Shown here: positions 36 through 56,100 of the stretch, one piece after another
How the letters are laid out: every line of letters begins with the position of its first letter
Position numbering within the stretch: position 1 is the stretch's first letter
NCBI GenBank assembly: GCA_964057225.1
Contig: OZ059900.1
Location: forward strand, 5,828,001 to 5,892,000
Source of the DNA: Auanema rhodensis
Taxonomy: Eukaryota > Animalia > Nematoda
Reading direction: 5' to 3'
DNA length: 64,000 nucleotides
The notes under the pieces: model-generated
Databases searched by the model: none
What the model saw: the letters and a program-made list of their open reading frames with translations, nothing else
Told to the model about the DNA's origin: nothing
Program-made: the position numbers and the translations under genes

Positions 36-2067
36 AGGCATTCGGAGTTTGTTCCTGTATTATCGATTTTTTGAAAACATATCTGATATTAATAGATTGA
101 ACAATATAACATCTTGGTGTAGTTGATGTGTTCCAAGTGAGTCAAAAACTTTCATTGGTTCCCATCCTCCCTGAAAACAAAAAATCTCTCTCTCTCTCTG
201 TAAATCTATATCCTCATCTCATCTACCATAACTAAATCTAAATCTCTATCCTTACATGAATCTCGAAATATCTCTGAAAACTGAAATCTAACCTATGACT
301 TATGATGCCAACTCTTGAAAAACATGAAATTCAGGAAGAAGCTTGTAAGCAAATTACTGACGAGAACTTTTGAAATTTTTAACATCCGTTCCTCTTTAAA
401 ATTGAGAAAACGACCCTACCTACTATGAGCAGAATGGCCTAAAGGTACACTGCATGGATTACAGATTAACCAACTAAGTTCAATACCTTTCTCTGTTTTT
501 TAAGAAAATCAATATCAAATCAAGAATCCAAAAAAACGGTCGGATGGATTTGGACTGTGAAAAGTCCTTTTTTTTCAACTTTTGAGCTTCGTAACTCAGT
601 TAGAAATTAATATTTTCCAATTTTGATTGAACGGGCAAATTGTGGAAGATGAACTCTTTCACCTCACTAAATTTTATTATCCTATCTGGTCTAGTATAAA
701 AGTTATAGCCTCCTAAAGAGGAGAGATTAAGTCAAAAACTTGACTTTGGAACACTATATCTCCTTAACCATTGAGTTTTTCAAAAATATTTTAGCGGATC
801 TGAACTCTACGTAGAAAGATCTTTTAGAAAAGCTACCTACATTGAAGATTGGAGTAGTTTGAAATTTTGGAAAATAGAAAATTCGGCCAATTTCAGGTTT
901 CAGAAATAAAAATTTCGAGATTTTCAAAAATTGAGAGTTGCATCTGATAGAGCTTGAATAGCTGATTTCAAATATAAAAAGCAAATTTCTTCATTCTCAC
1001 TTTGAAAGGAGTTATGAGACTTTTTATGTTTTGATGTTTTGTTTTCAGAAGGCCATATCTACCTTCAGACGGCATTTCAGGAATTTTTAGTTAGCAGAAT
1101 CGTTTTCTACGTGTCTGTTTTACTTGGTCAACTTAGTTTCAAATCATTTTGTTCGAATTTTCAATTTTCGATCAAATGGTCCAAATCCATGTACTACCCC
1201 CTTACCTACTTTTTCATCAAAGTTGACCATCATTATATGAACTTTTAAGATTTTCACAAGTTTTTTTCTTTAATTATATTTTATAAAAATAAGAATTAAA
1301 GATATTAGAAAAGAATTAATAAATATACTTTGAAAGTTCAAGAAATGATTGTCTCATCTAACAATCATTCAGATGCTCAACAAATCTTGTTAACCTAAAA
1401 CTTGTGATTATTCCGATTCTCGTGGAGAACTGCTTTCATTACAAATCTCTCAAGTTAGAAGTTGTTTCAAATTGGAAATCAACAAAAAACTTGTGAAAAT
1501 CTTAAAATTTTATGTGATGATGGTCAACTTTGATGAAAAAGTAGGTAAGGGGGTAGTACATGGATTTGGACCATTTGATCAAAAATTGAAAATTCGAACA
1601 GAATGATTTGGAACTAAGTTGACCAAGTGAAACAGACACGTAGAAAACGATTCTGCTAACTAAAAATTCCTGAAATGCCGTCTGAAGGTAGATATGGCCT
1701 TCTGAATGCAAAACATCAAAACATAAAAAGTCTCATAACTCTTTTCACAGTGAGAATAAAGAAATTTCCTTTTTATATTTGAAATCAGCTATTCAAGCTC
1801 TATCAGAAGGCACCCTCAATTTTGGAAAAACTCGAAATTTTTATTTCTGAAACCTGAAATTGGCCGAATTTTCTATTTTCCAAAATTTCAAACTACTCCA
1901 TTCTTCAATGTAGGTAGCTTTTCTAAAAGATCTTTCTACGTAGAGTTCAGATCCGCTAAAATATTTTTGAAGTCATAGGTTAGATTTCAGTTTTCAGAGA
2001 TATTTCGAGATTCATGTAAGAATAGAGATTCAGATTTAGTTATTGTAGATGAGATGAGGATATAGAT

Positions 2068-2120
<53 letters not shown>

Positions 2121-2263
2121 GTTTTCAGGGAGGATGGGAACCAATGAAAGTTTTTGACTCACTTGGAACACATCAACTACACCAAGATGTTATATTGTTC
2201 AGTCTATTAATATCAGATATGTTTTCAAAAAATCGATAATACAAGAACAAACTCCGAATACCT
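36..2263. mobile_element. Foldback-like long inverted-repeat element (non-autonomous, no transposase seen)
   Basis: Left arm 36-301 + 779-1266 is the reverse complement of right arm 1484-2263 (about 96-97% identity by eye). Spacer 1267-1483. Segment 302-778 is absent from the right arm (TT microhomology at the junction). Termini AGGCATTCGG / CCGAATACCT. No convincing TSD. Confidence 0.6.
2072..2114 (+). repeat. (GA)n microsatellite; mirror copy is the shorter (CT)n at 185-199
   Basis: Direct reading; about 21 units in the right arm vs about 7 in the left arm. Confidence 0.95.
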
Positions 2264-2275
2264 TGGTTATTATAA

Positions 2276-5060
2276 TATTTTTATCTGTGTTTGTATCAGT
2301 AGTTTGTTTACTGATTGGTATCTGAAACAATTTTGAAAATTTTCAAATTTGACATCAACTTGTTACAGAAAAGTTTTATTTTTTCGTTTCTTCATTCTAT
2401 TAATGCGTTGTCAGATGCTTAAGCCGTCCAAATTTCCAGTCAGGATACCAAATCCCATCTATTCATTTAAATAGCAAAGACCATCATTGGAAATGACTGC
2501 AGCTAAGCAAACAATAATGTCCTCAGTTCTTAGAAAATCTCGTATGATATCCTGGAAAATATTGGCAATTTGATGAGAATAGCATTCAGCGAAACTTTTC
2601 TCAACTCTTAATTATGCGAATTTCTAGCCAATTTAAACTCGACTTTCACAATGAGCATGAGAGGAAAATCAGTACATATCCAACATTTCTTTTCTTTGCA
2701 TATCTCTTAATACTATGAGTATGGAAAAGTACGAAAATAGATTTGGGATCTCGGATACTAACCTTCATGTTTCTGTTAACTTATACAAGGCACTTACAAT
2801 ACTAAGTTTACATACATATCATCTCAAACCTTCCATTTTCAGTTTTTGTCTGTCCTATCATTTCTTGGTTTTGCAGAAATAATGCAAAATCATCTTTTTT
2901 TATTGAATACATAATGAGAAGAAAATAGAAACATAAAATAGGATTCAATAAGTTTCAAATTGTTCGGTGATTCTTGGAGCCTCGATTCTACAATACGAAG
3001 CTAAAGCGTCTATATTTGTCAAAGTTATTTCAGATTTGTTGGAACTAGGTTGAAGGAAAATAAAATGAATTGAGGTCCATCTGTTTTCTAGCCTTGAACA
3101 GAAAAGTCAACTACATGTTTTTGTAATATTTAATGCTTTCCTGTTCATATTATCTTTTTTAGGATTTTGATATCTTTTTAGGATCTTAGCTGCTTTCAGT
3201 AGAAATAAAATTGAATCATGTTTGAAGTGACTGAATCGTTAACCAGAACATTTGTTGAATGCATTTTTAAGTATTTTAAAAGGTTATACGTAGGCTTCAA
3301 AAAGCTTCCAGGAAGAAACCTTGCATTAAATTTATGAAATAATACTCAGGCACATATGATTGCTGGGTGTGCTACCATTTGCATAATATTAATAAAATTT
3401 GAATGTCACTTAATAATACATATTGTGAAATTATTTTAAGCATAGTTATAAACGCAAGAACACGTCATCAAATCAAAAAAATTTTTAATTTAACTCCAGT
3501 TCTTTTTTTTTTGGATGGATTAATATTAGAAAAACAGGTGTAGATATTGAAGAAAAGCCACGAACACTACATTTGACCATTTTTTTGTATAATATACAAC
3601 ATGCAACTATGTTATAATAAGCAGCGTGCATTTCATTTTTAAAATTTTTTTTGTTGATAAAAGTACCAATAATTTTAAATGTACTGCTTTATGTTCTCAC
3701 GAAACACACATAATTTAGACATAATTGTATGTTGGTGGCGGCATGAGAAGTACGCTTGACCGCATAATTACGCTGTAGGGATTATATGGATTACAAGACA
3801 GCTTTCGCATTTGCTGCCCTCTAGTTAATGTATTTTCGTATCGCATATGTGCATCTGTTCCAACATCTCATGTCTCGTTTCTTCATTTTGTCACCTAACC
3901 ATCTCTCTACCTATTTGCTCTAACATTCTGCTTCTACATATCTCAAGCTCCACCCATCGGATAATGTCGAACAGCATTCAATGTCAATCCGTAGTCTACA
4001 CATGTTCTCTTTTCTTCTTATTATGTATTCAGTGAAGAACTGTTTTCAACGTTTTCTCTAACATTCTCTGTTTTTTTGTCGGATGGAAAATAGTGTTCTT
4101 CGCATGCAGACTAATTTTTAAATGATTATGCACTATTTCTGCAAAACCAAACAATGAGAGGTAAGATTTCTTGCAGAATCACTCAAGCAACTCGTAATTA
4201 AAAGACTTCAACCCACATAATGGTTGAACTTTGTGAAACATGCTTGATATAACGTGAAGTTCTCTGCTTTTTTCAACGGATCTCCGATAGACTTCCTGCT
4301 GAAAACGAAAATTGTTCCGTTTACACCTTGAAGTGCCTATCGGAGATCTGAAGACAACTCTTATATTCTAATTTCCGGACCCAGTGATCGGCAGAACGTT
4401 GATAAATCGTAAGGTGCAGACGTATTATAACCGTCTACACCTTCGCTTTTTTCAACGATCTTACGATATTTGACTCATTTCCTAAACAAAAACTGAAAAT
4501 GGAAGGTTTGAGATGCTATGTATGTAAACTTAGTATTGTAAGTGCCTTGTATAAGTTAACAGAAACATGAAGGTTAGTATCCGAGATCCCAAATCTATTT
4601 TCGTACTTTTCCATACTCATAGTATTAAGAGATATGCAAAGAAAAGAAATGTTGGATATGTACTGATTTTCCTCTCATGCTCATTGTGAAAGTCGAGTTT
4701 AAATTGGCTAGAAATTCGCATAATTAAGAGTTGAGAAAAGTTTCGCTGAATGCTATTCTCATCAAATTGCCAATATTTTCCAGGATATCATACGAGATTT
4801 TCTAAGAACTAAGGACATTATTGTTTGCTTAGCTGCAGTCATTTCCAATGATGGTCTTTGCTATTTAAATGAATAGATGGGATTTGGTATCCTGACTGGA
4901 AATTTGGACGGCTTAAGCATCTGACAACGCATTAGTAGAATGAAGAAACGAAAAAATAAAACTTTTCTGTAACAAGTTGATGTCAAATTTGAAAATTTTC
5001 AAAATTGTTTCAGATACCAATCAGTAAACATACTACTGATACAAACACAGATAAAAAATA
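2276..5060. repeat. Inverted duplication (palindrome 2): arms 2276-2849 and 4486-5060, 1.6 kb spacer
   Basis: Arms are reverse complements; about 4 substitutions plus a 1-nt poly-T length difference in ~575 bp. Confidence 0.95.
4029..4920 (-). CDS. Probable orphan gene or pseudogene spanning the right arm and spacer of palindrome 2 (model unresolved)
   Basis: Exon-like frames KYRKIVEKSEGVDGYNTSAPYDLSTFCRSL, QEVYRRSVEKSRELHVISSMFHKVQPLC and KSYLSLFGFAEIVHNHLKISLHAKNT...KTVLH*, with flanking splice-like signals. Candidate ATG at 4920 follows GTTGTCAG. Confidence 0.35.
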
Positions 5061-5158
5061 AAGAGAGAAAAACATTTTATTGACAACATCATACTGTTAA
5101 TCAGAAAAAACAAGAATATTCTTATATTACTGATTAAAAACTATTTTTAAATAGTATG

Positions 5159-5635
5159 TTAATATAAAAATATCAACGTGTAACTATTTTTAAAGTTGTG
5201 CCATCTCCGTCTTTCAATGTTAGTGACTTACAGTTCGGACCACATTCACACTTTAGGATTGCGTTTTTTTCGTTCTTCCTGTAAAATACATTAAGAATAC
5301 TTAGTTTATAAAACTCCAAAACCTATTGATAGTCAACTTGCTGCAACTAATGCCCTCTTCTTCATCAGTGCAACGATCTTGAATCAACGGACAAGTTTTT
5401 CTCTTTGGCGGTGTTTCTTCTGATGATTCTGAAAATGACGACAATTTGTGATAAACAAATGAGAAACTATTTACAAACCACTGGATTCATAATCATAAAC
5501 TGGGTAGAATATGGGACCAGGTCGGCCGCGAATCACAGGAGCTGCTGGCCTAGGCGGGGAATCAGCAGCTGGTATTCCATAGTTTGCCGCCACATATCCA
5601 ACCAGAATGAAGAAGTAATAGATGAGAGTCTTCAT
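5159..5635 (-). CDS. Small secreted Pro-rich/Cys-rich protein, 3 exons (absent from the ORF track)
   Basis: Spliced: MKTLIYYFFILVGYVAA (signal peptide) NYGIPAADSPPRPAAPVIRGRPGP...KTCPLIQDRCTDEEEGISCSKLTINRKNEKNAILKCECGPNCKSL... GT-AG introns in consistent phases; AATAAA near 5080 on the minus strand. Confidence 0.75.
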
Positions 5636-6440
5636 TTGTCTGCTGATTCCCAGTTATACAGGCATTTTGACGAATCTTTTATAAGAAATTTTCAGTGATT
5701 CACTAAAAATGGAATGTAATTTTGTATTTCATTCATGAATTATATGAATGATTAGTATTGCAATTCAGATTTGTTTCGCTTTCATGAATATGAATGAAAT
5801 TCTTGAACCATTCATTCATTTATTGTTGTTAAAATGAATTAAAAGAAAGTGAGGGAATCATGCTCATCTATCGATGTTTACTACATATTATACTTATAAA
5901 TATTCATTTTTCATATTGGAAATATATATACAAAGAAATGCGTTCATTAAACTGGATGAAAAATTATGAAAACAGCAATTTACTTTTCATCAATATTGAA
6001 ATTATGCAAGCGTAGATAAATGATGTTGCATAGCATTTCAGTGAAAAAAAAAAGAATTTTTTTGACCAAAATTTCTTCGAGAAATAAAATTTTACGTTAC
6101 AGAGGCATGCGTTCAATGGCAACAAGAATAAATGATCAAATCGGAATAAGTAAAAAAAAACATTAAAATGCTTCATGCATTTCGTACCATTAAGAGTTAA
6201 TCGAATCTACAGTGACCTGGTGAAGTATGATACAGTTACAGTTTCATAGGTGTATATAGTACATTGAAGTCACCGAATGCTGATAAATAAAATGTATTGT
6301 TATTATTGGAGTGCTGTAATAGCGTAAGTCAAAAAATTAAATTTTAGTTTTGGAATGAGATGAAAGTAGCTTGCTCATATATATATATATATATAAGTGT
6401 TGATAAGCATTCAGTTATGCTTATGAATAAGTTATTTTGT

Positions 6441-9400
6441 CTAGTCCTCTTTATAAACTTGTCCGTGAACTCGTAAACGATATAAGCATGTGAATTCAGC
6501 TCCGTAGTTTGAGACAGTTTCTAATTCGACAATTTTAACAGGGAACGGCGGTGAATTCTGAATTATGTTGTTGTCTTAAGAGCCAATCTGGATCAAATAC
6601 CTTAACGATGAAAAATTGAAGTGGTGGTTGATCAGTTTTGTATTCATATTCTCCAAGTAAGACACGACTGTTAAGATCATTTTCAGATTGATAGGCCTGA
6701 AATGTATTTTTTTTGGTCACAAAGTCAAAAGATAAATAGCAAAATACCCAGAATTTCAGTTTTTTAGGAGAGCTACGAAGTTCGCCGTCAGGAGTTTGAT
6801 TTTTGCCTGCAATCAATGAAAATTATAAAAATGTTTGGAAGAATAGATTTACCAATATGTTCGTAACTGATACTGCTGATTTTGATTCCATGAGATAAAC
6901 TTATCGTTAAATATCCTTTTCCTGTCTTGAAGCACCAGCATTCTCCGGGAAATAACGAATTTGAATTTCTCTAAAGCAGATTTTTCATCTTCATAATTCT
7001 TATATATCATGCCTGAATCACGGTGCGAGGACCATAGCTTGAATACCACAAAGGTATGTTCCATATTTTTTCTAAGCGGGAATACGAATCATAACTCTCA
7101 CTGCATCTGGTAGATATAACTGAAGCACCAGCACTTTCGAGTGCAAAATCGAATAAACCAGTTTTATCAATATCATATTGATAGATTGATTGACGAATTA
7201 AACTGGCTAATTCGGAATAATCATATTCAGCTCCATTTTTCTATAATTAGAGATATTTTCTACAGTTTCCAACAATTAATATAGTACCTGAGTCTTCAGT
7301 TCTTCAATTTGTTGCTGATAGCTTTTTTCAAATATATTTAATCGAGCTTCGAGCTCTGCTTGCAGCTGTAATTGAATCATTAATGAAATCTGCGAATAAT
7401 GCAATAAACCTCAGTCTTAATTTTATTCATAGATTCAGAATCTTCTTGAATTCTTATAGATGGAACTACAGGAGCAACGGGGACAGAAGATGGTTGTTGT
7501 TCCACTTTGTTAGCTACGATTGGAACTGTCGTCTTCAATTAAACGAATTACTTTGAAATCAAAAAATAAGAATCGTACGTGATCTCGTTGACATAGATAT
7601 ATCGGCAGAAACTCGGAAAAGAAAACAAAAGGATTTCTTACTCCAACATCAGCGATAACTCCAATGGTATAATTCCAAATGTTGAAGATATAGCTAGCAA
7701 TTAAATCACGGAATGAAATGAGGGACGACCAGCAGAATTGGAAAAAATGTTCAATCGCATGTACTGCATTTGTGAACCGTTCATACATTCCGATTTTCAG
7801 CTAAAATTGTCATTATTGTTTGAGAATTGTAAGCTTATGAAAAACCTGTGTTAAATCGATCTGTGATGTCATGTACCCCTTATATTTATAGACATCGTCA
7901 GCATAACTGCTTGTTACTATCTTTTCTTCATCTAAAATACTTATTTTTAAAAATATATTTAAAAAACAATAAAATACCGTCTTGTCGAAAACTTAAAAGG
8001 AAAAGAAAAAATGGAATCAAAAGCAAAAAAAGTAGAATCCAAAATTTCTTTCCTTTGGATGCCGAAGCCATTGAACATACTACAGTCATACAGCTTGAAG
8101 AACAAGCAGTTATGACTGATGTCAGAGACATTACTCTAAAGCGAACATTATTCAATGCTTCGAACCCATAATTGACAAAATCTGTGCCATCGTTATGAAT
8201 CTTGTTCACGGTTCTAAATATTAACATATTATAACAACTAGAACTTATCAACACTTACCTTTCAATCAATTCATAAAAGCGGAAAAATACTGTTAGAACT
8301 ATACGTAAAAACTCAAATAAAACAAATGCTATCAGGCCAATAAAGTATGAAGACCAAGAAACAGCTTTCTCATCATTTTCAGAACCTGAGTCTAGCCTTC
8401 GGCGCAATCTCATCCTAGGGCCTCGAGAAGGAGTTGAAGTTCTGAATAGAATCAAAGTTAAATTATTATCATTCCAATCAAATAAATTACATCACACCGC
8501 TGTCTTCATCTTCTGAATCAACTCCTATACGCCTGGAACGTTTGAAACTACGACGTTTCTCAGCCCCTCTAAACAATATTATTCTTTAGTTGAAGCTTTT
8601 CCCAATCTCATACTACCTCTCATCAGCATTAAATGAATTAGTAGCACACAATTTAGCATCTCCTTTTATAATACTCTACAACAAAGAAATATATCTATAT
8701 GTATACTTGAATAATATAATTACCATTGGAGTAGAATCGATATCAAAAGCGAGTGTTTGAGATATATCACTTATTGAAACTCTTTTTTGCTTAATAATAG
8801 CCTCAGAAATAGCAATCACACCCATTCCAATTCCTTGTTTGCAGTATTCTTAAACATTGAATTGGATTATTTTTTTTAAAACAAGAACTTACGAGCTAAA
8901 CCAACTATATTATTAGCAATAAAGGTGAGAAGAGATACAGTTCCAAATGTAAAATACCTTATAGTATTATATACACTTGAGATGATTAAAAGAATAAACT
9001 GTCCTATAAAATTAGAAAATATACACTAATCTCTACACAAAAATAAAATTTACCAAAAACGGAAAACAATCCTCCAATCCCACTAGATGCACCAGAATAA
9101 GTGTCACAGATTAGCTGTTTAGTTGATTGAGACGAATAAATCAATTGTTTGATAAAGGTTTCCGACAAATGGCGTAACCATACAACTATACGGTAAAAGG
9201 TTTGATAACATTCAACATCAGATAACCCTAACCTGGTTTAGTGATATTATTTCTTGTTTCTTGTAGAAAATAGATTAATCCACTTGTAATATGAGAAATA
9301 ACACTGTTCACTCCACCAAGTATTCCAAAAGTCAGTGTTTTAACAGCACAACAGACGAGGCTCACAATTTCAATAACTATAAGACACAATAATTAATTGA

Positions 9401-10147
9401 GAGAAAAAAACAAGAAAATCTAAAATAAGGTACTATCAGAGAACAAGAATTAATAATAGTTTTTTTTAAAGGTCATATAGAAGACGCGGTACTCTTTTAG
9501 TCGCGCGCCCAAAGTTTTTTTTGAACTGTGCGCGAGACTTGCCTGACGTAAATATTGTGAAAATCGTTTGATAGAAAAGTGCACCAGCGGAAATTGGAAC
9601 ATCAACAACAATTGTGCGAATAGACTTTGATAAGCAGTAATATGATATTTCTGCAATCCAAGTAATGCTCATCCAGATCTATAATAGAACACATTTTAAT
9701 GAAATTAACTTTGTATTTTCAAAATGATGTTATATCATGCGTTGCCATGTTTATATTTTTCAAATACTTTTTCTATTAATATCTACGTCACCTACCATGC
9801 GTAAGAGTGATGGAGCACCAAAATGTCTTGATTGACCTTTCTCTGTTTCCATGACATCTTGAACTTCCAGCCAATTATTAGCTAAGTTCGGAATTTCCCA
9901 TGAGTCAGTCTCTTCAGAATTATAGCAGTTACTGCAAAATTTACTATATACATTCTATTATTATTTTTTTGTACCTGCGAGCATAAGTATAACTTGTTCT
10001 GTATCCCAAAAACGGTGATGTTAACATCAGAGCTTCATCTTCAGTAAGCTTTGGTGAGTTAATAGTACGAACTGGAGGACGACTAAAAGACGGCCTTCTC
10101 TCCAAGATACGCTCTAAAGACGGTGATCGTGTTAAACGATCCGTCAT
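6441..10147 (-). CDS. unc-84: SUN-domain inner nuclear membrane LINC protein UNC-84
   Basis: C-terminal SUN domain: [14 protein letters not shown]...[22 protein letters not shown]...SYEHIG...RVLLGEYEY...PPLQFF...[23 protein letters not shown], closely matching C. elegans UNC-84 as recalled. Transmembrane segment [21 protein letters not shown] follows acceptor TTTCTAG. Confidence 0.9.
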
Positions 10148-10580
10148 CTAGAAATAAAAAAGATTGGTATACAGTCTTAAAGAATGTTGAAAAAATAAGA
10201 AACAGGGTGTTGTGGAGGAGGTGTGGTAAAGAAGAAGAGGATTAACGAGAAATGGTTCGATGTTGTCAAAAAACGTACAAAATGAATATTTTATTGCTAC
10301 CTTTCTTCTTATCGGTTGGTCAATATCTATTGAATAAATTATTCAAGGTCATTCTATCAATAGGAACAAGACAACACATCGAAACAAGCACGCCTCTTGA
10401 AGAAACATGACAAAAAATGTTTTTTTTTCTTGATACGAAAAAGAAAAAAAGTGTTTAAAACAACTGTAAGATATATATTTATAGTAGAAGAAAGCTATAT
10501 TTTTATTATGTATTACGTCGAATACAATAAGTAAAATGACCAGTTATTATAGAAAAGCTTGAAATTTCAAAATGAAAAAC

Positions 10581-10603
10581 TTGTTTACGAACTTCGTAAA
10601 CAA
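10581..10603. promoter_or_regulatory. Perfect palindrome TTGTTTACGAA-C-TTCGTAAACAA containing two inverted forkhead (TTGTTTAC) sites
   Basis: Direct reading; ~430 bp upstream of the unc-84 ATG. Function is inferred. Confidence 0.4.
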
Positions 10604-13600
10604 TTTCATACGCGCATTTGCGTATAATCATTTTGCCTACAGACTAAGTTATTTTGAAATAAAATATGCAAAAAAGACAAAAGACTGAAGCAAGCAATTA
10701 ATTGAAAAAGGCTTATATGTGTATATTATATTTTAAAATCGATTTTTCCTCAATCTTCATGTTGAGAAAGCGTTATTTGAATGTAATAAGAGAAATAGAT
10801 TGAAAATTGATAGCTTGTATGTCTAAAATAAACTTTTCTTATTGAAGAAATAAAGAAGAAAATGATTTTGTGATTAAGAAATAAAATACACATGAGATTG
10901 AAATGATACAAACAATAGAAAGTATGCTAAAATTCTCAACATCTGGGGACAGCGTTATAACATCTTTTGCACGCCTCGATTATTGATCGATCTGCCAATT
11001 CTGCCTGTTCGACCTCTCTCAATCACTCAGTGTCTCATCAACAATAAAGGTCAGGGCACAACAGACATAAGCCAACAAAAGCCTGAATGAGATTGTTTGC
11101 AAATTTGATTATTTCTCAACAAAAATGAAAACATATAGGATTATGATACTAGAGAATACAGGAAAAGAATTATTTTAATAAATGGATGAAATATGCAAAG
11201 AGTTTGAAATTTGTTCATTGTATGCAATAAAAAGAATATTCATTATTCTTATGTATATATCTAATTGAATGGAAAATATCTCAAAACACTTGAAACCTAT
11301 ATTAAAACCACGACCTTTATGTTATCAATACAGAGAATATTGATAGATATGAATATATAGAACTGAGCATGCTTTCTGACTACATTTATATCTATCAGAT
11401 ACATTTTTATGTTCAATCTATTTGAACAATACTCAAATAATCATTTTCTAAAAATTTTATTGTTTATCTTTGATCATATATCATGATTATGTCATTCGTA
11501 TCTCAATTCGAAGACAGATTCACAATTTTTGAGAGAGAGAAAACTCCCTAACATAATTTAACAATTGTTGTAAGTAAAGTGCAAACAGAATCTTTTTCTG
11601 CAGATTAGACAAGCAAATTAAGATTATTCTTCCAAGTATACGTAGATGAAATGGCCCTCCTTCGCGAGAAAATGATGTAACCATAAACTCATTTGCTCGT
11701 TTTGACATGTAGTGACAAATGTATTCTCACAATGTCAGACTGATTAGTAGCTTGTATGGCTCTAGCTTGTATGAAAAAAAAAGTTGTGACCAGCTTTTCT
11801 GTTTTAGTCAAAATTTTTTATTTTATTTATATTTATATCTTTTCAACTTCATTTAGCATTACTACAATGCTAAGCAATAAAAAATATGGGATAACTATTG
11901 TTTGAATTCACTTAAAGAATTCTAACTACGATTTCAGCAATATGTTTTATTTTCTGTTGAAAACACGGATATAAAACTATTTCTCTCAAATATATATCAT
12001 ACATTTATTGCGCTCTTGCCAATTGATATCCACTTTATCAACTTCCGTTTTTTCTCTCTAGAAATTAAAATTTCACTGGATTTGATAAAATTCGACATTT
12101 TCCATCATGTCTGCCTGGCTACAGCGGCATTTTGGTAACAACCTGTGCACTGACAGCATAAGCTCATAAATAAAAAATTTCCTTGGTTTTCCCATAAAAA
12201 TCGTTTTCCTTTCTTTTCTAATTGAAGCTCTCGCCAATATATTACAACTTTTGTCATTTTCCCTCTTGTGGCAACAGTGATGTGCAACAAAATATAAAAA
12301 ACTTTATATAATTTGTACTCAGATGGTCATCGCTTTAGTCTGAAAATTAAATAACCAAAGCTCTTTCTTTAACATTTTTCTATAATTTATTGTCTGACGT
12401 TAACACGATTATGCAGCTATTCTTCTGCACATTATTCATTTTCAAAAATTTGCTTTCAACGATTAGATAACTCTAAGTTATTCGCCGATATCTTTGAAAA
12501 CTTTATTCCACTTTAAGTCCACTTCAGCTGCCCTTACTGGATGTTAGATAGCTCGAGTAATATTCTTCTTGAGCACACAGGAGGCAATCTCTTTTTTAGC
12601 TCTTGTTATATATGATTTGTTGTTCGTGCTCTATTTAATTTACTTTCCGTGTATTTATCGTTTACTTAAAATTATTGTTATTACTTTCTTGCTTATTTCA
12701 CACGAAACCATCAAAGCGATATATCAACATTCATTTTTTACAATGAAAGAACAAAAAATATTATTTTTAGTTCTTTCTTTTTTTCTTTCAATCCTCTTAC
12801 TTGCTATAGTTTGGCTCTCTCCATTAATGATAGCTTGAGGTATTGTGTTGACATCAATCATGTATACAATTGGATTATGATGAATATAAAATTATAGAGA
12901 ATAATGATATTAGAAAGTTTTCATCTTTCACAAGCTTATAAGAAACGCACTAAAAGAGATAGTATTGAAATATGAAAATCTGAAAATTAAAAAAAAATTG
13001 AATTTTCACGTATTCATAAGTTTATAAGTAAAAAGTGATTGCTCTATTATTCAAAATACAGCCATCTTCTCATCTTTTAGCTACACATTCTAGAAAGATG
13101 TGAGATTCTAAACTAAAAAAAAGATTGTTTAATGACAAAACAAACCAAAAAACTTGCATCTAATTATATATATATATATAATATATTTCCATGTATTTTA
13201 GAGATTTTCTATATCATGCTGTGAAATTTTTATCATAAATAGCTGATAGTCTTCCTCTGCTCACATTTAATTTCTATATAGATAGATATCAATTTATCTC
13301 TCTCTTTCTATTTATTATTTTAGTCCTAATCCAAATCCGACCAATCTCATTTGCTTCCTTTCGACTACCTCTGAAATGAATTTATTTTCCTGATTCTAAA
13401 AAAAAAGATTTTTTTTGTTCTCTGGTCATTTTTGAAAATTTAATAATTGAATTATTACCAAAGTCCTCATTTTCAATTGTTTTCAGTGATCATAAACTTT
13501 TTTAAACTTCCTTATGGGAAATTAAACTTTTGTGCTTCTGACATTATTCATTTCAAATCTATCCATTATCTAGTCAACCGCCTTTTTTTTTTTGTTAAAA

Positions 13601-13642
13601 AATCGTATAGTTGAATTATATATTTTCAGAAATATTTATGAG

Positions 13643-14882
13643 ATGAAGCCACTTTATGTCATTCTTTTCTTTGTTCACATCACCATTAATTATGGATTCT
13701 TAATACGTAGTCACGTTCACAGGTACAATTATATTTTATTTATAAAGCATATATCATTTACTTATTTCATTGATGCACCCTGTAATGTAACAGAAGGACT
13801 AAAATGCTTTACCAGTCTGTTTGGAATGGTTGGAAATTTTTGTGAAGAAAAAATCAATCTAAAATGCATTCATTACGAGGTAAGGATTAGCGATAAACTT
13901 GAAAGTAAAAATGGTATTAACACTTCAAAATATGGCTTGAGCATTGAACAGAAAGGTTGAATCTTCACTCCTAACACTAAGCTCTACATTTTTACCAATC
14001 AAATGTTGCCATTTAGATATCGTTTTCAGTAACTTAAACAACCGCGAATGTTTTATTTTCAGTATTTGGATAAATGTTTCGAAAAAAATGTAGGCAAATG
14101 TACTGCTCAATGGGTTAGCAAATTATCGTTAGTTGGATATTATGATACAATAGATTTATGCACAAAACGAGGACGAGTACGCATGAGCGAATTAACTAGA
14201 GTAAGGAAAAAAATGTTTTAATGGTAGGGATCGTAAAATTGAAATATGATTTGCAGAAGCCAATTAAAACTCATCTGTCACAGAATAAAATGCTATTTAT
14301 GCTGGGACATCTGCAAGATCAATGTTATTCGACAAAAAATCGAAATTGTTCAAGTAGCTATATGAGTAATATTGTTACTCAATGTGAGGATAATATCAAA
14401 CATTTTGTTGGATTTACGGATTATGATAGACATAAGCTATTGAGGTTTGCTCGAATCATTTTGCTTTTAGAATTTCACTTTTTTACATTCAGAATTAAGC
14501 TGGAAACATCCGTAAAACTACTTACATTCGATAAAACAGATCGTGAACGAGAGTGCCTAGTTGTTCGTTCACTGCTCTCTGAGATGTATACAATGCATCT
14601 TCAATATTGCTATCATGTAGGCTTCTTTAAACTCTCTATCTCTCTTGCTCTTTTTAAAGTGAAATTCGTGTCTTTCAGACTGTCATTACTCGGTGTGTAT
14701 GTGAAAATCCGGCAATTGAGCAGTATTGCAAGATTGACTGCTCTTCTATTGAGCCTGAAAGTCCAACTCAGACACGTCTGATGTGGGACAAGTGGAACAA
14801 GATCTATCTTGTTAACTTTGACCATGAACTTTTCATGAATCTAATGCCGTTAGTTCTTTTGATTTTAATAATTTGTTGGTAG
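13643..14882 (+). CDS. Secreted/putatively GPI-anchored cysteine-rich protein
   Basis: ATG after TTTTCAG acceptor; signal peptide MKPLYVILFFVHITINYG; many spaced Cys (CNVTEGLKCF, CYSTKNRNCS, TRCVCENPAIEQYCKIDCS); hydrophobic C-terminus MNLMPLVLLILIICW*. Confidence 0.75.
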
Positions 14883-15514
14883 TCATGTTGTTGTTGTACA
14901 AAATACAGTATATAAGTAAATGAAGATCTCATAATTGTTATAATTCCATTGTATAGTTAAATATATATTTTTTTATATTGTTTATTCTTTATTCTTATAA
15001 TAACAATAACACTTATATAGTAAAGTTGATTTTTATGACATCATTTAGATCATAAGATAATGCTAAGAAAACTCTGGGAAATTTCAAAAAATCTTTTACT
15101 TTTTCAAAATGTCTCTCACGCTGACAAACTATTTGAATGAAGAAGTGTTTTAAAAAAATGAATTGTCTTCAAGAAAAAATTTGAACAGAATTTCTAGAAC
15201 TCTGTTCTTTATTGAGCCGGCAAGCATTGCAAACATCTTATGTGGCTCTGTTAACTTAATAAGTTAATTATATCTATTATAAGTAACACACATTTTTTTA
15301 ACATCTTCAGAAACAGATATATTCGATTCAATGTTAATCTCATACTCTTCGTCTCTTACACCACTCCCCCTAGCACTCCATTTGTCCCTCCTAGTTTAGT
15401 TTCTCATTCATTTCTATCCAGCTCTTCATTGCTTTATTCTCTCTCTATATTTTCTCATTGTTTTTGAAAGATTTTAAGCCTTTTCGGATTGTTTTAACAC
15501 TGTTCAACTAGACT

Positions 15515-16157
15515 ATGTTCACTCTTGACAATACTGAGATTCGGTATGTAAGTGCAGAAGAAGTTGAAACTGGAAGCTTCTATATCATTCGCCAATTTCA
15601 TACTTTCACTCGGATGAATGAAGATCTTCATGGACAGATTGTTTGGATTCCTCATCGAGAGGCCATTGATACTGCAACACTACCATCATCCTACTGGCAA
15701 GCGTATAATGTGCAGCCAGAAGATCGAATAGATTTATTTGGACCTCTTGGAGTTATTCGTAATGATCTCATGTCATCTGCCATGGTCTGTTCTTGTTCTA
15801 TTAACGTGATCTTGATGTTTATAACTTAGGCTAGAACGCGTCGTCGATCAGCTCGTTGTATTGATCGTATTCGTTCTGAAATTCCCGAAGAAAATAATAT
15901 GATACCGAAAGATGAACTTGAAGCAGAAGAGGAAGATGATGGTGACAAGACTCCTACCAACGAATGGTCAGATGGCTCTACTACTCCAACAAGCGAAATG
16001 ATTGAAGAAAAAGAAGATGTGTTGGAAAAAGAAAAAGAAATTATTCCCTATCCACATGTAAACATGGAAACTAAAATTTTTCACTTTTTAATTACTTTTC
16101 CAGGAAGGCCCATACTACGCTGGTTGGCATAGGAGAATCTTATTAATTGTTCCATAG
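15515..16157 (+). CDS. 183-aa orphan protein with acidic low-complexity region, copy A (exons 15515-15784, 15830-16057, 16104-16157)
   Basis: Two phase-0 GT-AG introns give MFTLDNTEIRYV...SSAM|ARTRRRSARCIDR...EEEDDGDKTPT...PYPH|EGPYYAGWHRRILLIVP*. Confidence 0.85.
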
Positions 16158-16596
16158 TTACTTTTTTTCATCTATATGTAAAGATTTATATATAGATATA
16201 TGTTATTATGTATTATATGTACACTATTCAATATGCTCTCAATTCTTCTTATGAACTCTTTCTTCTTCTTTTTTTGTCGTTAATTAGTAAACACATAAAA
16301 TACTATGCTGATAGTTTTTCTGTTGATTGAAGTTAAGGAAGTACAAGTAATCTATTTCCACAATTTATTTGAATTTGACAAAAAAATGCAAAGAAAAGAA
16401 AATACAACGTTATACTATAAGTGAGATAAAAACATTTTCAAATACAATAATTTACAAACTATATCAAGCTAAGATGCAAAAAAAAGAAGAAGAAAGAGTT
16501 CATAAGAAGAATTGAGAGCTTATTGAATAGTGTACATATAATACATAATAACATATATCTATATATAAATCTTTACATATAGATGAAAAAAAGTAA

Positions 16597-17239
16597 CTAT
16601 GGAACAATTAATAAGATTCTCCTATGCCAACCAGCGTAGTATGGGCCTTCCTGGAAAAGTAATTAAAAAGTGAAAAATTTTAGTTTCCATGTTTACATGT
16701 GGATAGGGAATAATTTCTTTTTCTTTTTCCAACACATCTTCTTTTTCTTCAATCATTTCGCTTGTTGGAGTAGTAGAGCCATCTGACCATTCGTTGGTAG
16801 GAGTCTTGTCACCATCATCTTCCTCTTCTGCTTCAAGTTCATCTTTCGGTATCATATTATTTTCTTCGGGAATTTCAGAACGAATACGATCAATACGACG
16901 AGCTGATCGACGACGCGTTCTAGCCTAAGTTATAAACATCAAGATCACGTTAATAGAACAAGAACAGACCATGGCAGATGACATGAGATCATTACGAATA
17001 ACTCCAAGAGGTCCAAATAAATCTATTCGATCTTCTGGCTGCACATTATACGCTTGCCAGTAGGATGATGGTAGCGTTGCAGTATCAATGGCCTCTCGAT
17101 GAGGAATCCAAACAATCTGTCCATGAAGATCTTCATTCATCCGAGTGAAAGTATGAAATTGGCGAATGATATAGAAGCTTCCAGTTTCAACTTCTTCTGC
17201 ACTTACATACCGAATCTCAGTATTGTCAAGAGTGAACAT
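16597..17239 (-). CDS. 183-aa orphan protein, copy B (convergent with copy A)
   Basis: Mirror copy with intact splice sites; differs by one synonymous (ACA/ACG) and one Cys>Arg (TGT/CGT) change. Confidence 0.85.
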
Positions 17240-18019
17240 AGTCTAGTTGAACAGTGTTAAAACAATCCGAAAAGGCTTAAAATCTTTCAGAAACAATGAG
17301 AGAATATAGAGAGAGAATAAAGCAATGAAGAGCTGGATAGAAATGAATGAGAAACTAAACTAGGAGGGATAGTATGAACGCAGAACAAATGGAGTGCTAG
17401 GGGGGAGTGGTGTGAGAGACGAAGAGTATGAGATTAACATTGGATCGAATATATCTGTTCCTATAGGTGTCAGAAAACTATATGCTGGAATTATAATAAA
17501 AATACATCATTTGATCGTTCGTAAAACAGATAGAAGCAAAAAAATGCTGAATAATCAGATGATCGTATCTTTTCTGTTTCAAATCTTTTGATGATCTCAC
17601 GTTTGATTGATCATTATGATATGAGATATATTGGTTTTCCCACTTTGAAAAAAGTAAAAATGGTGCCATTGCTATATATATGCAATAGTTCTTATAAGTT
17701 GTATGAATCATGCTCTCATCTATTCTATAAGTACGATGAGTTTGATTTAATAATTCATAAAATATTTCACAAAATGTATAATACTGATTTACGGAACAAA
17801 ACCAAATGCGTAGAAAACGCTAAATCATTCATGATATCGGATGTAGTGAAGGCTTTCAATTTACAAATTCACAAATTTATTTTCTGATGTTGTCAACTTT
17901 TTCATTTTTCCTACTTTGATTAGCTGAAGACAGCAGATATCCGGCTAGTTGTGGAACAAATGAGATTGGATTGAGTTGGATTAACAAGTGAAGAAGGAAG
18001 ACAATGAGGTACTAGGAAC

Positions 18020-53100: not shown

Positions 53101-56100
53101 TGCTTTAGCAACAACTATAGAAAATCAGAAAAATGGAGTTTGGACGTTTCCACCCCAGCCGGGTATGGTGAGCTATGGTGTTGAAGAAGGAGAGTTAAAA
53201 CTTCAATATATGAAAGATATTGAAAAAGTGGACGGTTACACGTTTGATGTAGAAGTAAGAGTAAATGACAATAAACTGACACTTTCGTTCAATAATTCAG
53301 AATATTTATCGACGTCATCACTCGGAAGAAATGTGTGCACCCATGTTCTGCTTCAAAATATGCTATGGCTTATCTTTTGCTGACACTGAAAATTTGTTTT
53401 TCATGGCACCCACATCAATATGCCATTTATGGATAACAGGATTAACAAGGGTTAATTGGTTAAATTGAAAAATATTTTTTTTGTTATTATTTTCAGATGA
53501 ATAATCTATTTCATGCACAGTACAAGTACGCTGATCGTAGGATGTTGTGGCTCAAACAGTTATATCTTCAACTATATCGTGAAAGCTCGCCTGATCCAGC
53601 CAATAAACGACATTTGGGACCAAAACCATATGAAGCTCTGCAAGCATTTGGCGGCAGAGTAGAACGCTGGAAAGGATTCGGCTTGACCCAGCCGTCTAAC
53701 TGGCAGAACCGTCCAAACGATTCATCTCATTCTAGTGAAAATGGAGGAGGAGCAAAAAATAGGTAAACATATTTTGAAAATTTTAAAATTAAGAACATTA
53801 AATTAAATTTTATAATCAAATATCAAAGCAACAATTTTCTAGTAAGCCAACTTTCAGACTAAAAAATTTTAAAAATGCTATGCAAAGAAAGCTTCGAGGA
53901 GCTTCTAGAGATAATAGTCCTTCAACTAGTCCACAACCTCATTCATCCATGGTAACTTTTTTTCATTTTTGTGATGTTCAGGTTTATATCATCAGGTTCG
54001 ACCACCATCAATCAAATCTCAAATGTCCCTTCAATCTGGTCCAGCTGGATCAAATTCTCCTGGCTACCTTCTAAAACCTCGTTGTGATACAGCTATTAGT
54101 GACACTTGTGATGCAGATAGTATTTACACTCCAAGAAGTCGAACTCCAACCAGCAGTTCATATGGAGGTATTTCTTAGGTACTATAGTTTTTTCATTCAA
54201 TAATTAAGGTAAATCATTGGGAGGTCGTTCTGTTAGATCATGGCGTTCACGCGGCGGCGAAACACCAAATAGTGGCTCTGTTAGCAGTAGTGGACAAATA
54301 TCTAATCTTGGATCAGGATTAAGTGCCCCAAGTGGCAAAGAAATTCAAGACAAGCCACTAACTTTCCTAGAATTTTGTGAACTTTTCCGTTTATTGGTGA
54401 CACGTATGCGTAAAGAATTGAAGTAATTACTTGCACGATATTAATTCTATAACTTAATCAAACTTTACAGAGACATTTTTAATGAATTCATTGCTTCAAC
54501 GCTTATTCATATAGTGGTACCTGCTAAGCGCGATAGAATATCTTTACCCCAAACAAGTACAGCAGATCATTCAGGGGTACATCTACCAAATGGTTTAACT
54601 TTTAATTTGCTAAAATTTTTGAAGCGTTTTTATTCAGATTTTCTAACAAGAAATTTCTTTTTGAATAGTCCAACACTAGGAGAAAAACAGCTGAAAATAT
54701 ACAATGCATTAGCCGTTGCCAGTGTTAATAGGTAATCAAGTTATTCTAATTTTAACAAACTTTGCTTTTAAGTTCTTATGGGTTCATTGACACATCTCGT
54801 ACAACAGTTATGACAGCCACTATGTTGAAAGATTTTATTTGTAATCATCAAATGGAAGACGTTGATGAAGATCGAGCCGTTCAGTTGATACATGATCATG
54901 AGCCTGATCCATATTTTCGTTCCAAGAATCAATTATCATTTGAAGGATTTTTCCGATATCTTACCGATCCAGCAAACTTTGCATTCATACCGGAAACAGT
55001 TACTGTTGATGAATCAACTATGCATTATCCACTTTCACATTACTTCATCAATTCGAGTCATAATACTTATCTCACTGGACATCAATTGAGAGGTCCAAGC
55101 AGTGAAGAAATGTACCGACAGGTACTCGTGGCTGGTTGTCGATGTGTTGAGCTAGATTGCTGGGATGGAGATGATGGTTTTCCACTTATATACCACGGAC
55201 ATACATTAGTTTCAAAAATAGCCTTCCGACAAGCAGTTGACGCTATAAAGAAATCTGCTTTTGAAAGTTCAGACTTACCAGTAATTCTATCAATTGAAAA
55301 TCACTGCTCTTTAGAACAACAAGTGCTAATGGCACAATCATTTAAGGTTTAATTGATTTGTTTTTTTTGTTTCTGAGCTGTTGTTTCAGGCGGTTTTTGG
55401 TGAAAATCTTGTAACAAACTTTTTATTTGAAGCCGATTATTCGGACAGCCCTCACTTACCTTCTCCCTGGCAATTACGAAACAAAATTCTAATCAAAAAC
55501 AAAAAAATCATAGGTATGCTATGCTTGTTGGAAGAATAACGAGTTATATTTCTATTTAGTTGAACCTGCTGCTCCTTTGCCACTGATTATGAATAAAGAA
55601 GCTCATCAACAATTACTAAGAAAGCAAAGTCGTAATAGCAATGAATCAAGGTGTTGTCTTTCAACGCCTTCTTTTTTGCATTTTTATCGTTTAGCTATAG
55701 CAACTTGGATGATTTGTTTGATGATGCTGAAATGGGAGATGAATTACATACTTCAGATAGTGATGATCAATTTAGTTCGTGTTCTATGAACTTTTTGATT
55801 GAAACATATGCATTTTAGATAATGATAGAAAACTTAGAAGAGAGGAAAGTCCTAATTTACGGAAGTCAATCCGACTAAAAAATCTTCCAAAACAGGATTC
55901 GCTTGCCAGTGATCCAAGTGATGAAAAGCCTAACCTTCATCAAAATGTTAGTTTAAATTTTAATTATTGAAATCAGTGTTTCTTCAGTTGAACGCTCAGC
56001 TTTCAAATAAAAATGATGATGAATCTTTCTATTCTTCGCTGTCATCAACAATTGCTGCAAACCCGCCATGTCCCTTATCAGCAGCATGCAAATTGACAGG

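Follow-up and report, generated by a model that had tools for sequence, protein, structure and literature searches.

An X-restricted palindrome family and its associated orphan genes in the nematode Auanema rhodense

Introduction

On the sex chromosomes of mammals, birds and some plants, palindromes that carry amplified, fast-evolving genes are a characteristic feature, for which restricted recombination and selection related to the germline or to drive are the usual explanation. For nematodes, a full-text literature search found no example of sex-chromosome amplicons or palindromes. The present study concerns a stretch of 64,000 nucleotides (nt) from the three-sexed nematode Auanema rhodense, hereafter the window (C8:5828001-5892000 of the germline assembly), which holds three long inverted repeats, designated P1, P2 and P3, the first of which belongs to a palindrome family found only on the X chromosome.

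Several other known systems generate comparable structures. Nematode foldback or palindromic transposons (Tc4/Tc6-like, PAL-type) exist in many non-coding copies of 1.6-3 kb, each a palindrome nearly throughout and closed by a short loop. Template switching mediated by inverted repeats underlies the human duplication-triplication/inverted-duplication (DUP-TRP/INV-DUP) rearrangements and the replication U-turns of fission yeast, which are sporadic pathogenic or experimental events. In the Drosophila hairpin-RNA (hpRNA) and Stellate/Su(Ste) suppressor systems, the hairpin arms derive from the target genes. In addition, small, adjacent, inverted and nearly undiverged duplicates are described as frequent among newborn C. 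elegans duplicates (PMC2728529).

Here, we describe the P1 family, the genes found with it and the two other inverted repeats of the window, and conclude, with a probability of roughly 60%, that the X chromosome of A. rhodense carries a restricted system of palindromes and amplified genes, of which P1 is an old, non-coding member, whereas P2 and P3 are separate young duplications.

Results

Chromosomal location

The assembly of A. rhodense APS4 (180,911,798 bases) and the printed fluorescence in situ hybridization probes come from a preprint (bioRxiv 10.64898/2026.08.27.747507), which also names the RNA data set E-MTAB-7667. The X-retained satellite probe XR-1 gave matches on C8 from 7.21 Mb onward, spaced at a period of 348 nt; C1-C7 were not among the matches listed. 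For the autosomal probe AT-1, C1 was among the matches listed. Since the X-retained satellite sits on C8, this contig is the X chromosome, and the window is X-linked, lying within the first gene-rich block of C8. X linkage had been proposed as probable in an initial annotation of the window from the presence of genes that are X-linked in C. elegans, and the satellite on the same contig now bears this out directly. Synteny with C. elegans would not have sufficed, because the A. rhodense counterparts of C. elegans X genes lie not just on linkage group (LG) 5, the X, but on LG2 and LG4 as well (PMC6469403). Females of A. rhodense have normal X recombination.

The P1 palindrome and its X-restricted family

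Inverted repeats in the window were located by repeat search and self-BLAST. The P1 palindrome comprises the following features (window coordinates):

25-1266, no strand: P1 left arm, full-length for the X-restricted palindrome family; family core at ~475-1232
1187-1209, plus strand: copy of the family 23-mer, with one mismatch to CCATGTACTCCCCCCTTACCTAC (C8:5829187-5829209)
1267-1483, no strand: P1 spacer, 217 nt; six other subfamily-A loci have spacers that match it at 96-99.5% identity, in one orientation or the other
1484-2274, no strand: P1 right arm, in which the counterpart of 302-778 is deleted
1541-1563, minus strand: mirror copy of the 23-mer (C8:5829541-5829563)

The inner 488 nt of the P1 arms are 96% identical and their outer parts 88-97%. 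When P1 was used as a query against the genome, 187 matches from 39 scored candidates were obtained, all on C8, and they resolved into a family of ~29 loci between 5.65 and 10.33 Mb. Each of these loci is itself palindromic, with arms of 0.9 to >3.7 kb, an arm identity of 88-99.8% and spacers of mostly 135-370 nt, the top loci reaching 99.8% arm identity over 3.4-3.7 kb. The most conserved 23-mer, CCATGTACTCCCCCCTTACCTAC, searched with at most two mismatches, gave 56 matches in 181 Mb, 28 per strand, against none for the reversed control. All of these matches lie on C8 (5.655-10.328 Mb), nearly all in facing pairs, and since none lies beyond 10.33 Mb, the third gene-rich block near 13.7 Mb holds no match to the 23-mer. 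Searches with the subfamily-C unit and with an outer arm module likewise returned C8 only, save for three matches of 33-48 nt. The X-specific part is the P1 palindrome family and its genes.

Four subfamilies, each clustered in space, make up the ~29 loci, which are evenly spaced within one region of the chromosome. In the block at 9.14-10.33 Mb, 15 loci lie 84.5 +/- 21 kb apart (coefficient of variation (CV) 0.25), an evenness that not one of 200,000 random placements reached; spacing was looser in the first block (CV 0.47, P = 0.008). Ancient tandem duplication followed by decay of the non-coding DNA would explain this regularity as well as functional constraint would.

The family is non-coding. 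Open reading frames (ORFs) of 69 amino acids (aa) in the P1 arms were rejected as genes, as tblastx between subfamilies met stops in all six frames. A structured RNA in one family arm was likewise rejected, the consensus fold reaching just -9 kcal/mol across 390 columns and showing hardly any covariation, and a match to a plant microRNA hairpin family in Rfam lay far below the gathering score, reflecting hairpin shape only. No tRNA was found. In the window, P1 itself is probably an old, decaying and gene-less member at the edge of the X-restricted system.

Three further observations on the family are recorded here. Read outward from the centre, the 23-mer resembles a 5' splice donor (AG/GTAAG), both at 1187-1209 and 1541-1563 of the window and at all family loci. 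An in-frame mini-ORF with an ATG precedes the 23-mer in three of the four subfamilies. One family palindrome is flanked by a tandem repeat with a period of ~164 nt, in opposite orientations on its two sides (L031:1-3950 and 9623-10000; C8 ~9.135-9.145 Mb).

Concerted evolution of the arms and homogenization of the centres

When 41 arm cores were placed in a tree, ~17 of 21 loci had their two arms as sisters, with identities of 94-99.8% between the arms of a locus compared with 68-92% between loci. As the arms group by locus, the P1-family arms evolve in concert. Between loci, identity is highest at the centre (97-99%) and drops to ~72-90% outward; the 217-nt spacer of subfamily A, which occurs in both orientations, is 96-99.5% identical between loci. 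Furthermore, the cores differ by 4-10%, while neighbouring paralogs have a synonymous divergence (dS) of 0.44 to >2, indicating that the cores have been homogenized, are constrained or arrived later. GC content of arms compared with spacers gave no conversion-type signal.

Beyond the shared unit, the flanks of the palindromes are mirror images and yet locus-specific, and one such flank of 2.1 kb is single-copy with arms that are 100% identical. Over eight loci, arm-to-arm divergence was 0.25% in the outer parts and 1.47% in the inner unit (Fisher, 2e-23). No target-site duplications or terminal motifs were found at unit ends or palindrome ends. A nested transposon was considered as the source of the mirror flanks and rejected, the 2.1-kb flank tested being single-copy, and insertion of a small, young foldback element into the centres was rejected because the arm alignments continue through the centre-proximal region.

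Higher-order palindromes also occur. C8:5999783-6004722 and 6010109-6015036 (L022, L012) match at 98.5% identity across 4954 nt or more around a centre near 6007416, and each of these arms holds a whole family palindrome; a further case lies at C8 ~10319-10330 kb.

Gene families associated with the palindromes

When the palindromes were masked and their flanks compared by tblastx, two gene families, X1 and X2, were found. X1 is represented by a stop-free exon of ~180 aa and X2 by an exon of ~150 aa with invariant histidine and cysteine positions. The genome holds 27 matches to X1 and 17 to X2, all on C8 between 6.18 and 10.43 Mb. The X1 frames are intact throughout, and four X2 matches contain one or two stops. 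Paralogs share 21-47% of residues (71% in one recent pair), with a ratio of non-synonymous to synonymous divergence (dN/dS) of 0.2-0.6 and a dS mostly >1. X1 is predicted with confidence to be all-helical, the model having no significant match in PDB, and the structure model of X2 is of low confidence. Neither family has a Pfam match or an Atlas neighbour, and a word search with the X1 and X2 profiles (targets of 0.55-1.75x query length) found no relative at E <= 0.001; X1 and X2 are unrelated to each other by sequence comparison. For these families, as for the P3 gene described below, single exons served as queries in the orphan searches.

Both families are tied to the palindromes in position and orientation. 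A palindrome centre lies no more than 6 kb away from 28 of their 44 matches, where 12% would be expected, and 26 of these 28 read toward it. Mirror gene pairs lie within the arms for X2 at 9.428 Mb and for X1 at 10.324 Mb. X1 and X2 are X-only orphan families associated with P1-family palindromes. Moreover, 5S, U2 and U4 genes lie in or beside the arms, above Rfam gathering scores, and all nine read toward the centre; at the 5.69 Mb locus, a U2 and 5S pair is duplicated in both arms. Their positions, identified with Rfam as 5S ribosomal RNA and U2 or U4 small nuclear RNA genes, are:

L021:4123-4545 and 8603-9025, toward the centre: 5S/U2/U4 RNA genes
L029:32-150 and 2711-2829, toward the centre: 5S/U2/U4 RNA genes
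L032:346-495 and 2832-2950, toward the centre: 5S/U2/U4 RNA genes
L037:9522-9640, toward the centre: 5S/U2/U4 RNA gene

P2 and P3, two young inverted duplications

The window holds three inverted repeats with arms of 0.57-1.2 kb at 96-99.4% identity, and these arm matches are far beyond chance. The initial annotation had reported three long inverted repeats within 17.5 kb and none in the remaining 46 kb; all three were recovered where it had placed them, and no further inverted repeat of at least 100 nt was found in the rest of the 64-kb window. Besides P1, the features are:

2278-2849, no strand: P2 left arm, single-copy in the genome, beginning 3 nt past the end of P1
2850-4485, no strand: P2 spacer, 1636 nt, its halves not mirrored save for a 40-nt remnant of 88% identity (2854-2893 vs 4122-4161)
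4486-5057, no strand: P2 right arm (inverted-repeat search)
15312-16275, no strand: P3 left arm (inverted-repeat search and self-BLAST)
15515-16157, plus strand: P3 gene copy A, exons 15515-15784, 15830-16057 and 16104-16157, a 183-aa model
16276-16478, no strand: P3 spacer, 203 nt (inverted-repeat search)
16479-17459, no strand: P3 right arm (inverted-repeat search and self-BLAST)
16597-17239, minus strand: P3 gene copy B, mirror of copy A, exons 17239-16970, 16924-16697 and 16650-16597

Genome searches found both P2 and P3 to be single-copy. The P2 arms (572 nt) differ at 4 positions (99.3% identity), and P2 contains no ORF of more than 55 aa. A division of P2 into two divergence strata was rejected, since the spacer halves do not align beyond the 40-nt remnant. 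P2 starts 3 nt beyond the outer end of the P1 right arm (window 2274-2278), although its sequence is unrelated.

The ungapped P3 arms (15385-16275 and 16479-17369) differ at 5 of 891 nt (99.4% identity), and with one indel allowed they reach 15312 and 17459 over 981 columns. Each P3 arm carries one copy of a three-exon gene, a model read from the sequence, with GT..AG introns of 45 and 46 nt. The two copies stand tail to tail with 440 nt between their stop codons; two changes, one synonymous and one non-synonymous, distinguish them. They are the only two copies genome-wide at the DNA and protein level and have no Pfam match; exon 1 found no relative among 1.84 billion representatives and none in the Atlas. 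The P3 protein is unrelated to X1 or X2. Thus, the earlier claim that two of the palindromes carry orphan genes held for P3 only, the P1 frames being broken in its relatives and the P2 ORFs being too short to credit.

P1, P2 and P3 are of different origin, one being an old family member and two being young single-copy duplications. Probably P2 and P3 arose as separate young fold-back inverted duplications, the latter duplicating a three-exon orphan gene tail to tail, and P2 may have arisen secondarily, by rearrangement where a palindrome was unstable. Non-family inverted repeats of such size occurred about once in the 200 kb of other X sequence analysed, so that two singletons in 64 kb are a mild excess only.

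Other features of the window

A plc-1-like PI-PLC-X exon was confirmed at 54762-55352, and the exons of the plc-1-like gene start at ~43 kb. This gene was one of the X-linked landmarks named in the initial annotation; another, vab-15, could not be verified, as no homeobox signature was found in the window. Upstream of the plc-1-like gene, positions 1-42000 look gene-poor, and no Pfam match was obtained for ten long stretches free of stops that were sampled from 5 to 48 kb.

Discussion

Origin of the palindrome family

The structure, copy number, X restriction, concerted evolution and gene association of the P1 family are properties of the assembled chromosome, and they accord with the proposal of an X-linked palindrome or amplicon system that the initial annotation had made for the window. 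The proposal holds at the scale of the chromosome, where ~29 X-only palindromes evolving in concert stand with two X-only orphan families, and is less well supported within the window, where the three inverted repeats do not form one system. We infer the mechanisms, and any function, from these patterns. Arm-to-arm gene conversion would keep the two arms of each P1-family locus alike, and ectopic repair or constraint would keep the centres alike between loci. Template switching mediated by the inverted repeat could then extend the arms outward into locus-specific DNA, which at many loci carries X1, X2 and 5S, U2 or U4 genes pointing at the centre. P2 and P3 would be products of fold-back inverted duplication, presumably the most frequent way in which new duplications arise in rhabditid worms.

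Several points weigh against this reading. The window contains neither X1 nor X2, and the tie of P1 itself to that gene system is through family membership only. If a single duplicated unit gave rise to all the loci, their gene orientations and regular spacing do not count as independent observations. Arm-to-arm conversion is read from the shape of the tree, which carries no date, and ectopic conversion reaching only one arm of the inner unit could explain the lower outer divergence in place of recent outward growth. As for P2 and P3, they could simply be very young.

Two other accounts of the family have to be weighed. A non-autonomous foldback-type DNA transposon hopping locally on the X, with the genes as bystanders or preferred targets, would fit the ~29 dispersed copies with flanks unrelated at the DNA level, the cores much younger than the neighbouring paralogs, the spatial clustering of the subfamilies and, in subfamily D, a discrete common unit of ~2.7 kb with consistent ends. 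We regard it as unlikely, however, given that neither target-site duplications nor terminal motifs mark the units or palindromes, that two-sided mirror-image flanks are not a product of insertion, that arm lengths vary by locus and no transposase was seen, and that evenly spaced copies confined to 4.7 Mb of one chromosome, rather than dispersed over the genome, would be unusual. Some weight, though clearly a minor share, may be given to the idea that the conserved core is a functional X element, either a protein-binding site recognizing or organizing the X or a central promoter or hairpin whose outward transcripts, antisense to X1 and X2, would silence them through small RNAs. The X of A. rhodense segregates abnormally and is handled differently from the autosomes in DNA elimination. 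The 23-mer is invariant in a core otherwise ~70% conserved, is X-only, and reads outward like a splice donor; conservation peaks at the centre; the loci are spaced more evenly than any random placement; and with 26 of 28 X1/X2 exons and nine of nine RNA genes pointing at the centre, outward transcription would be antisense to them. A non-coding core with mirror pairs of the 23-mer every ~85 kb might then serve as an X landmark or as a convergence-point control silencing X1 and X2, the palindromes being kept for this role and not as by-products of repair, but on balance we find this doubtful. Neither the similarity to X1/X2 that a hairpin-RNA source would need (by BLASTN of the core) nor an initiator plus downstream promoter element (Inr+DPE) type promoter module was found in the palindromes, and the copy in the window is decaying. 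Gene conversion can explain the conservation, and descent from a tandem unit can explain the spacing and orientation. Furthermore, a listing of lineages that lack the condensin-DC SMC-4 duplicate includes that of Auanema (PMC12629237).

The clustering of the three repeats could also be due to chance, ordinary inverted duplications being frequent throughout the genome on this account and the three neither related to one another nor in any way special to the X. P2 and P3 are indeed single-copy and unrelated to P1, and newborn nematode duplicates are often inverted neighbours, but this account is improbable for the trio as a whole, as P1 belongs to an X-only family, P2 lies within 3 nt of P1, which suggests a mechanistic link, and P3 has its gene copies tail to tail, as genes are arranged at family loci. 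That the palindromes are fold-back artefacts of long-read assembly is hardly credible. Chimeric fold-back reads do give near-identical arms and short spacers; the arms of the three repeats, however, differ by 4, 5 and at least 21 substitutions, and together with the P3 indel and the 477-nt one-sided deletion of P1 these differences argue against such artefacts. The features are, moreover, internal to a 26.9-Mb HiFi contig, and ~28 diverged relatives of P1 share its architecture. The X-restricted system, with P1 as an old member and P2 and P3 as young additions, thus remains our preferred reading.

Comparison with known systems

The young inverted gene duplicates of C. elegans (Katju and Lynch, in PMC2728529) resemble P3, and probably P2, in being small, adjacent, inverted and nearly undiverged, as though duplication and inversion had been a single event. 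P3, and likewise P2, is adjacent, inverted and almost undiverged, with no further copies. The C. elegans duplicates are described as genome-wide and short-lived, whereas P3 lies inside a chromosome-specific system and the P1 family is old, multi-copy and homogenized. With nematode foldback transposons, the P1 family shares multi-copy, non-coding, palindromic units with a short loop, but it differs in having no target-site duplication or terminal motif, in its mirrored flanks, and in being evenly spaced on one chromosome. Template switching near an existing inverted repeat could account for the symmetric extension of arms into unique flanks and for the higher-order palindromes; unlike the known events, the products in Auanema are fixed at many loci of one chromosome. 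Stellate/Su(Ste)-type systems are alike in combining long inverted repeats with amplified, fast-evolving, sex-linked genes, but the Auanema core, unlike hpRNA arms, has no detectable similarity to X1 or X2. Tested as an hpRNA against possible targets, the core showed no BLASTN similarity to flanking genes or other loci, and the P3 arms would match their own gene only.

The closest likeness is to the palindromes on the X and Y of mammals (P1-P8 of the human Y; those of the primate X), which share with the A. rhodense family the location on a sex chromosome, near-identical inverted arms round a unique spacer, arms that evolve in concert, nested higher-order palindromes and, at some loci, arms or flanks with multi-copy, fast-evolving and chromosome-restricted genes. 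The P1 family lies on the X, has high-identity arms round an unduplicated spacer and shows concerted evolution; chromosome-restricted multi-copy arm genes occur at some family loci, and within the window P3 alone carries a gene, a singleton in two copies, P1 and P2 having none. The differences are considerable. Mammalian arms measure 9 kb to 1.45 Mb, and those in Auanema 0.6 to at least 5 kb. In Auanema, unlike mammals, there is one common non-coding core with a central invariant motif on which the genes converge, the arms hold 5S, U2 and U4 RNA genes, and the host is XX/XO, with no Y and with programmed DNA elimination.

With arms of a few kb, ~29 loci and a culturable worm in whose relatives CRISPR has been used, the X family of Auanema is a small and tractable case, which could be used to test how palindromes originate, grow and are homogenized, and whether amplified X genes relate to X transmission bias. 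Base-level evidence for the growth of arms from a common core is, in addition, relevant to the mechanisms of inverted duplication generally. An X-only palindrome family tied to X-only orphan genes closely recalls the gene-bearing palindromes that mammals have on their sex chromosomes.

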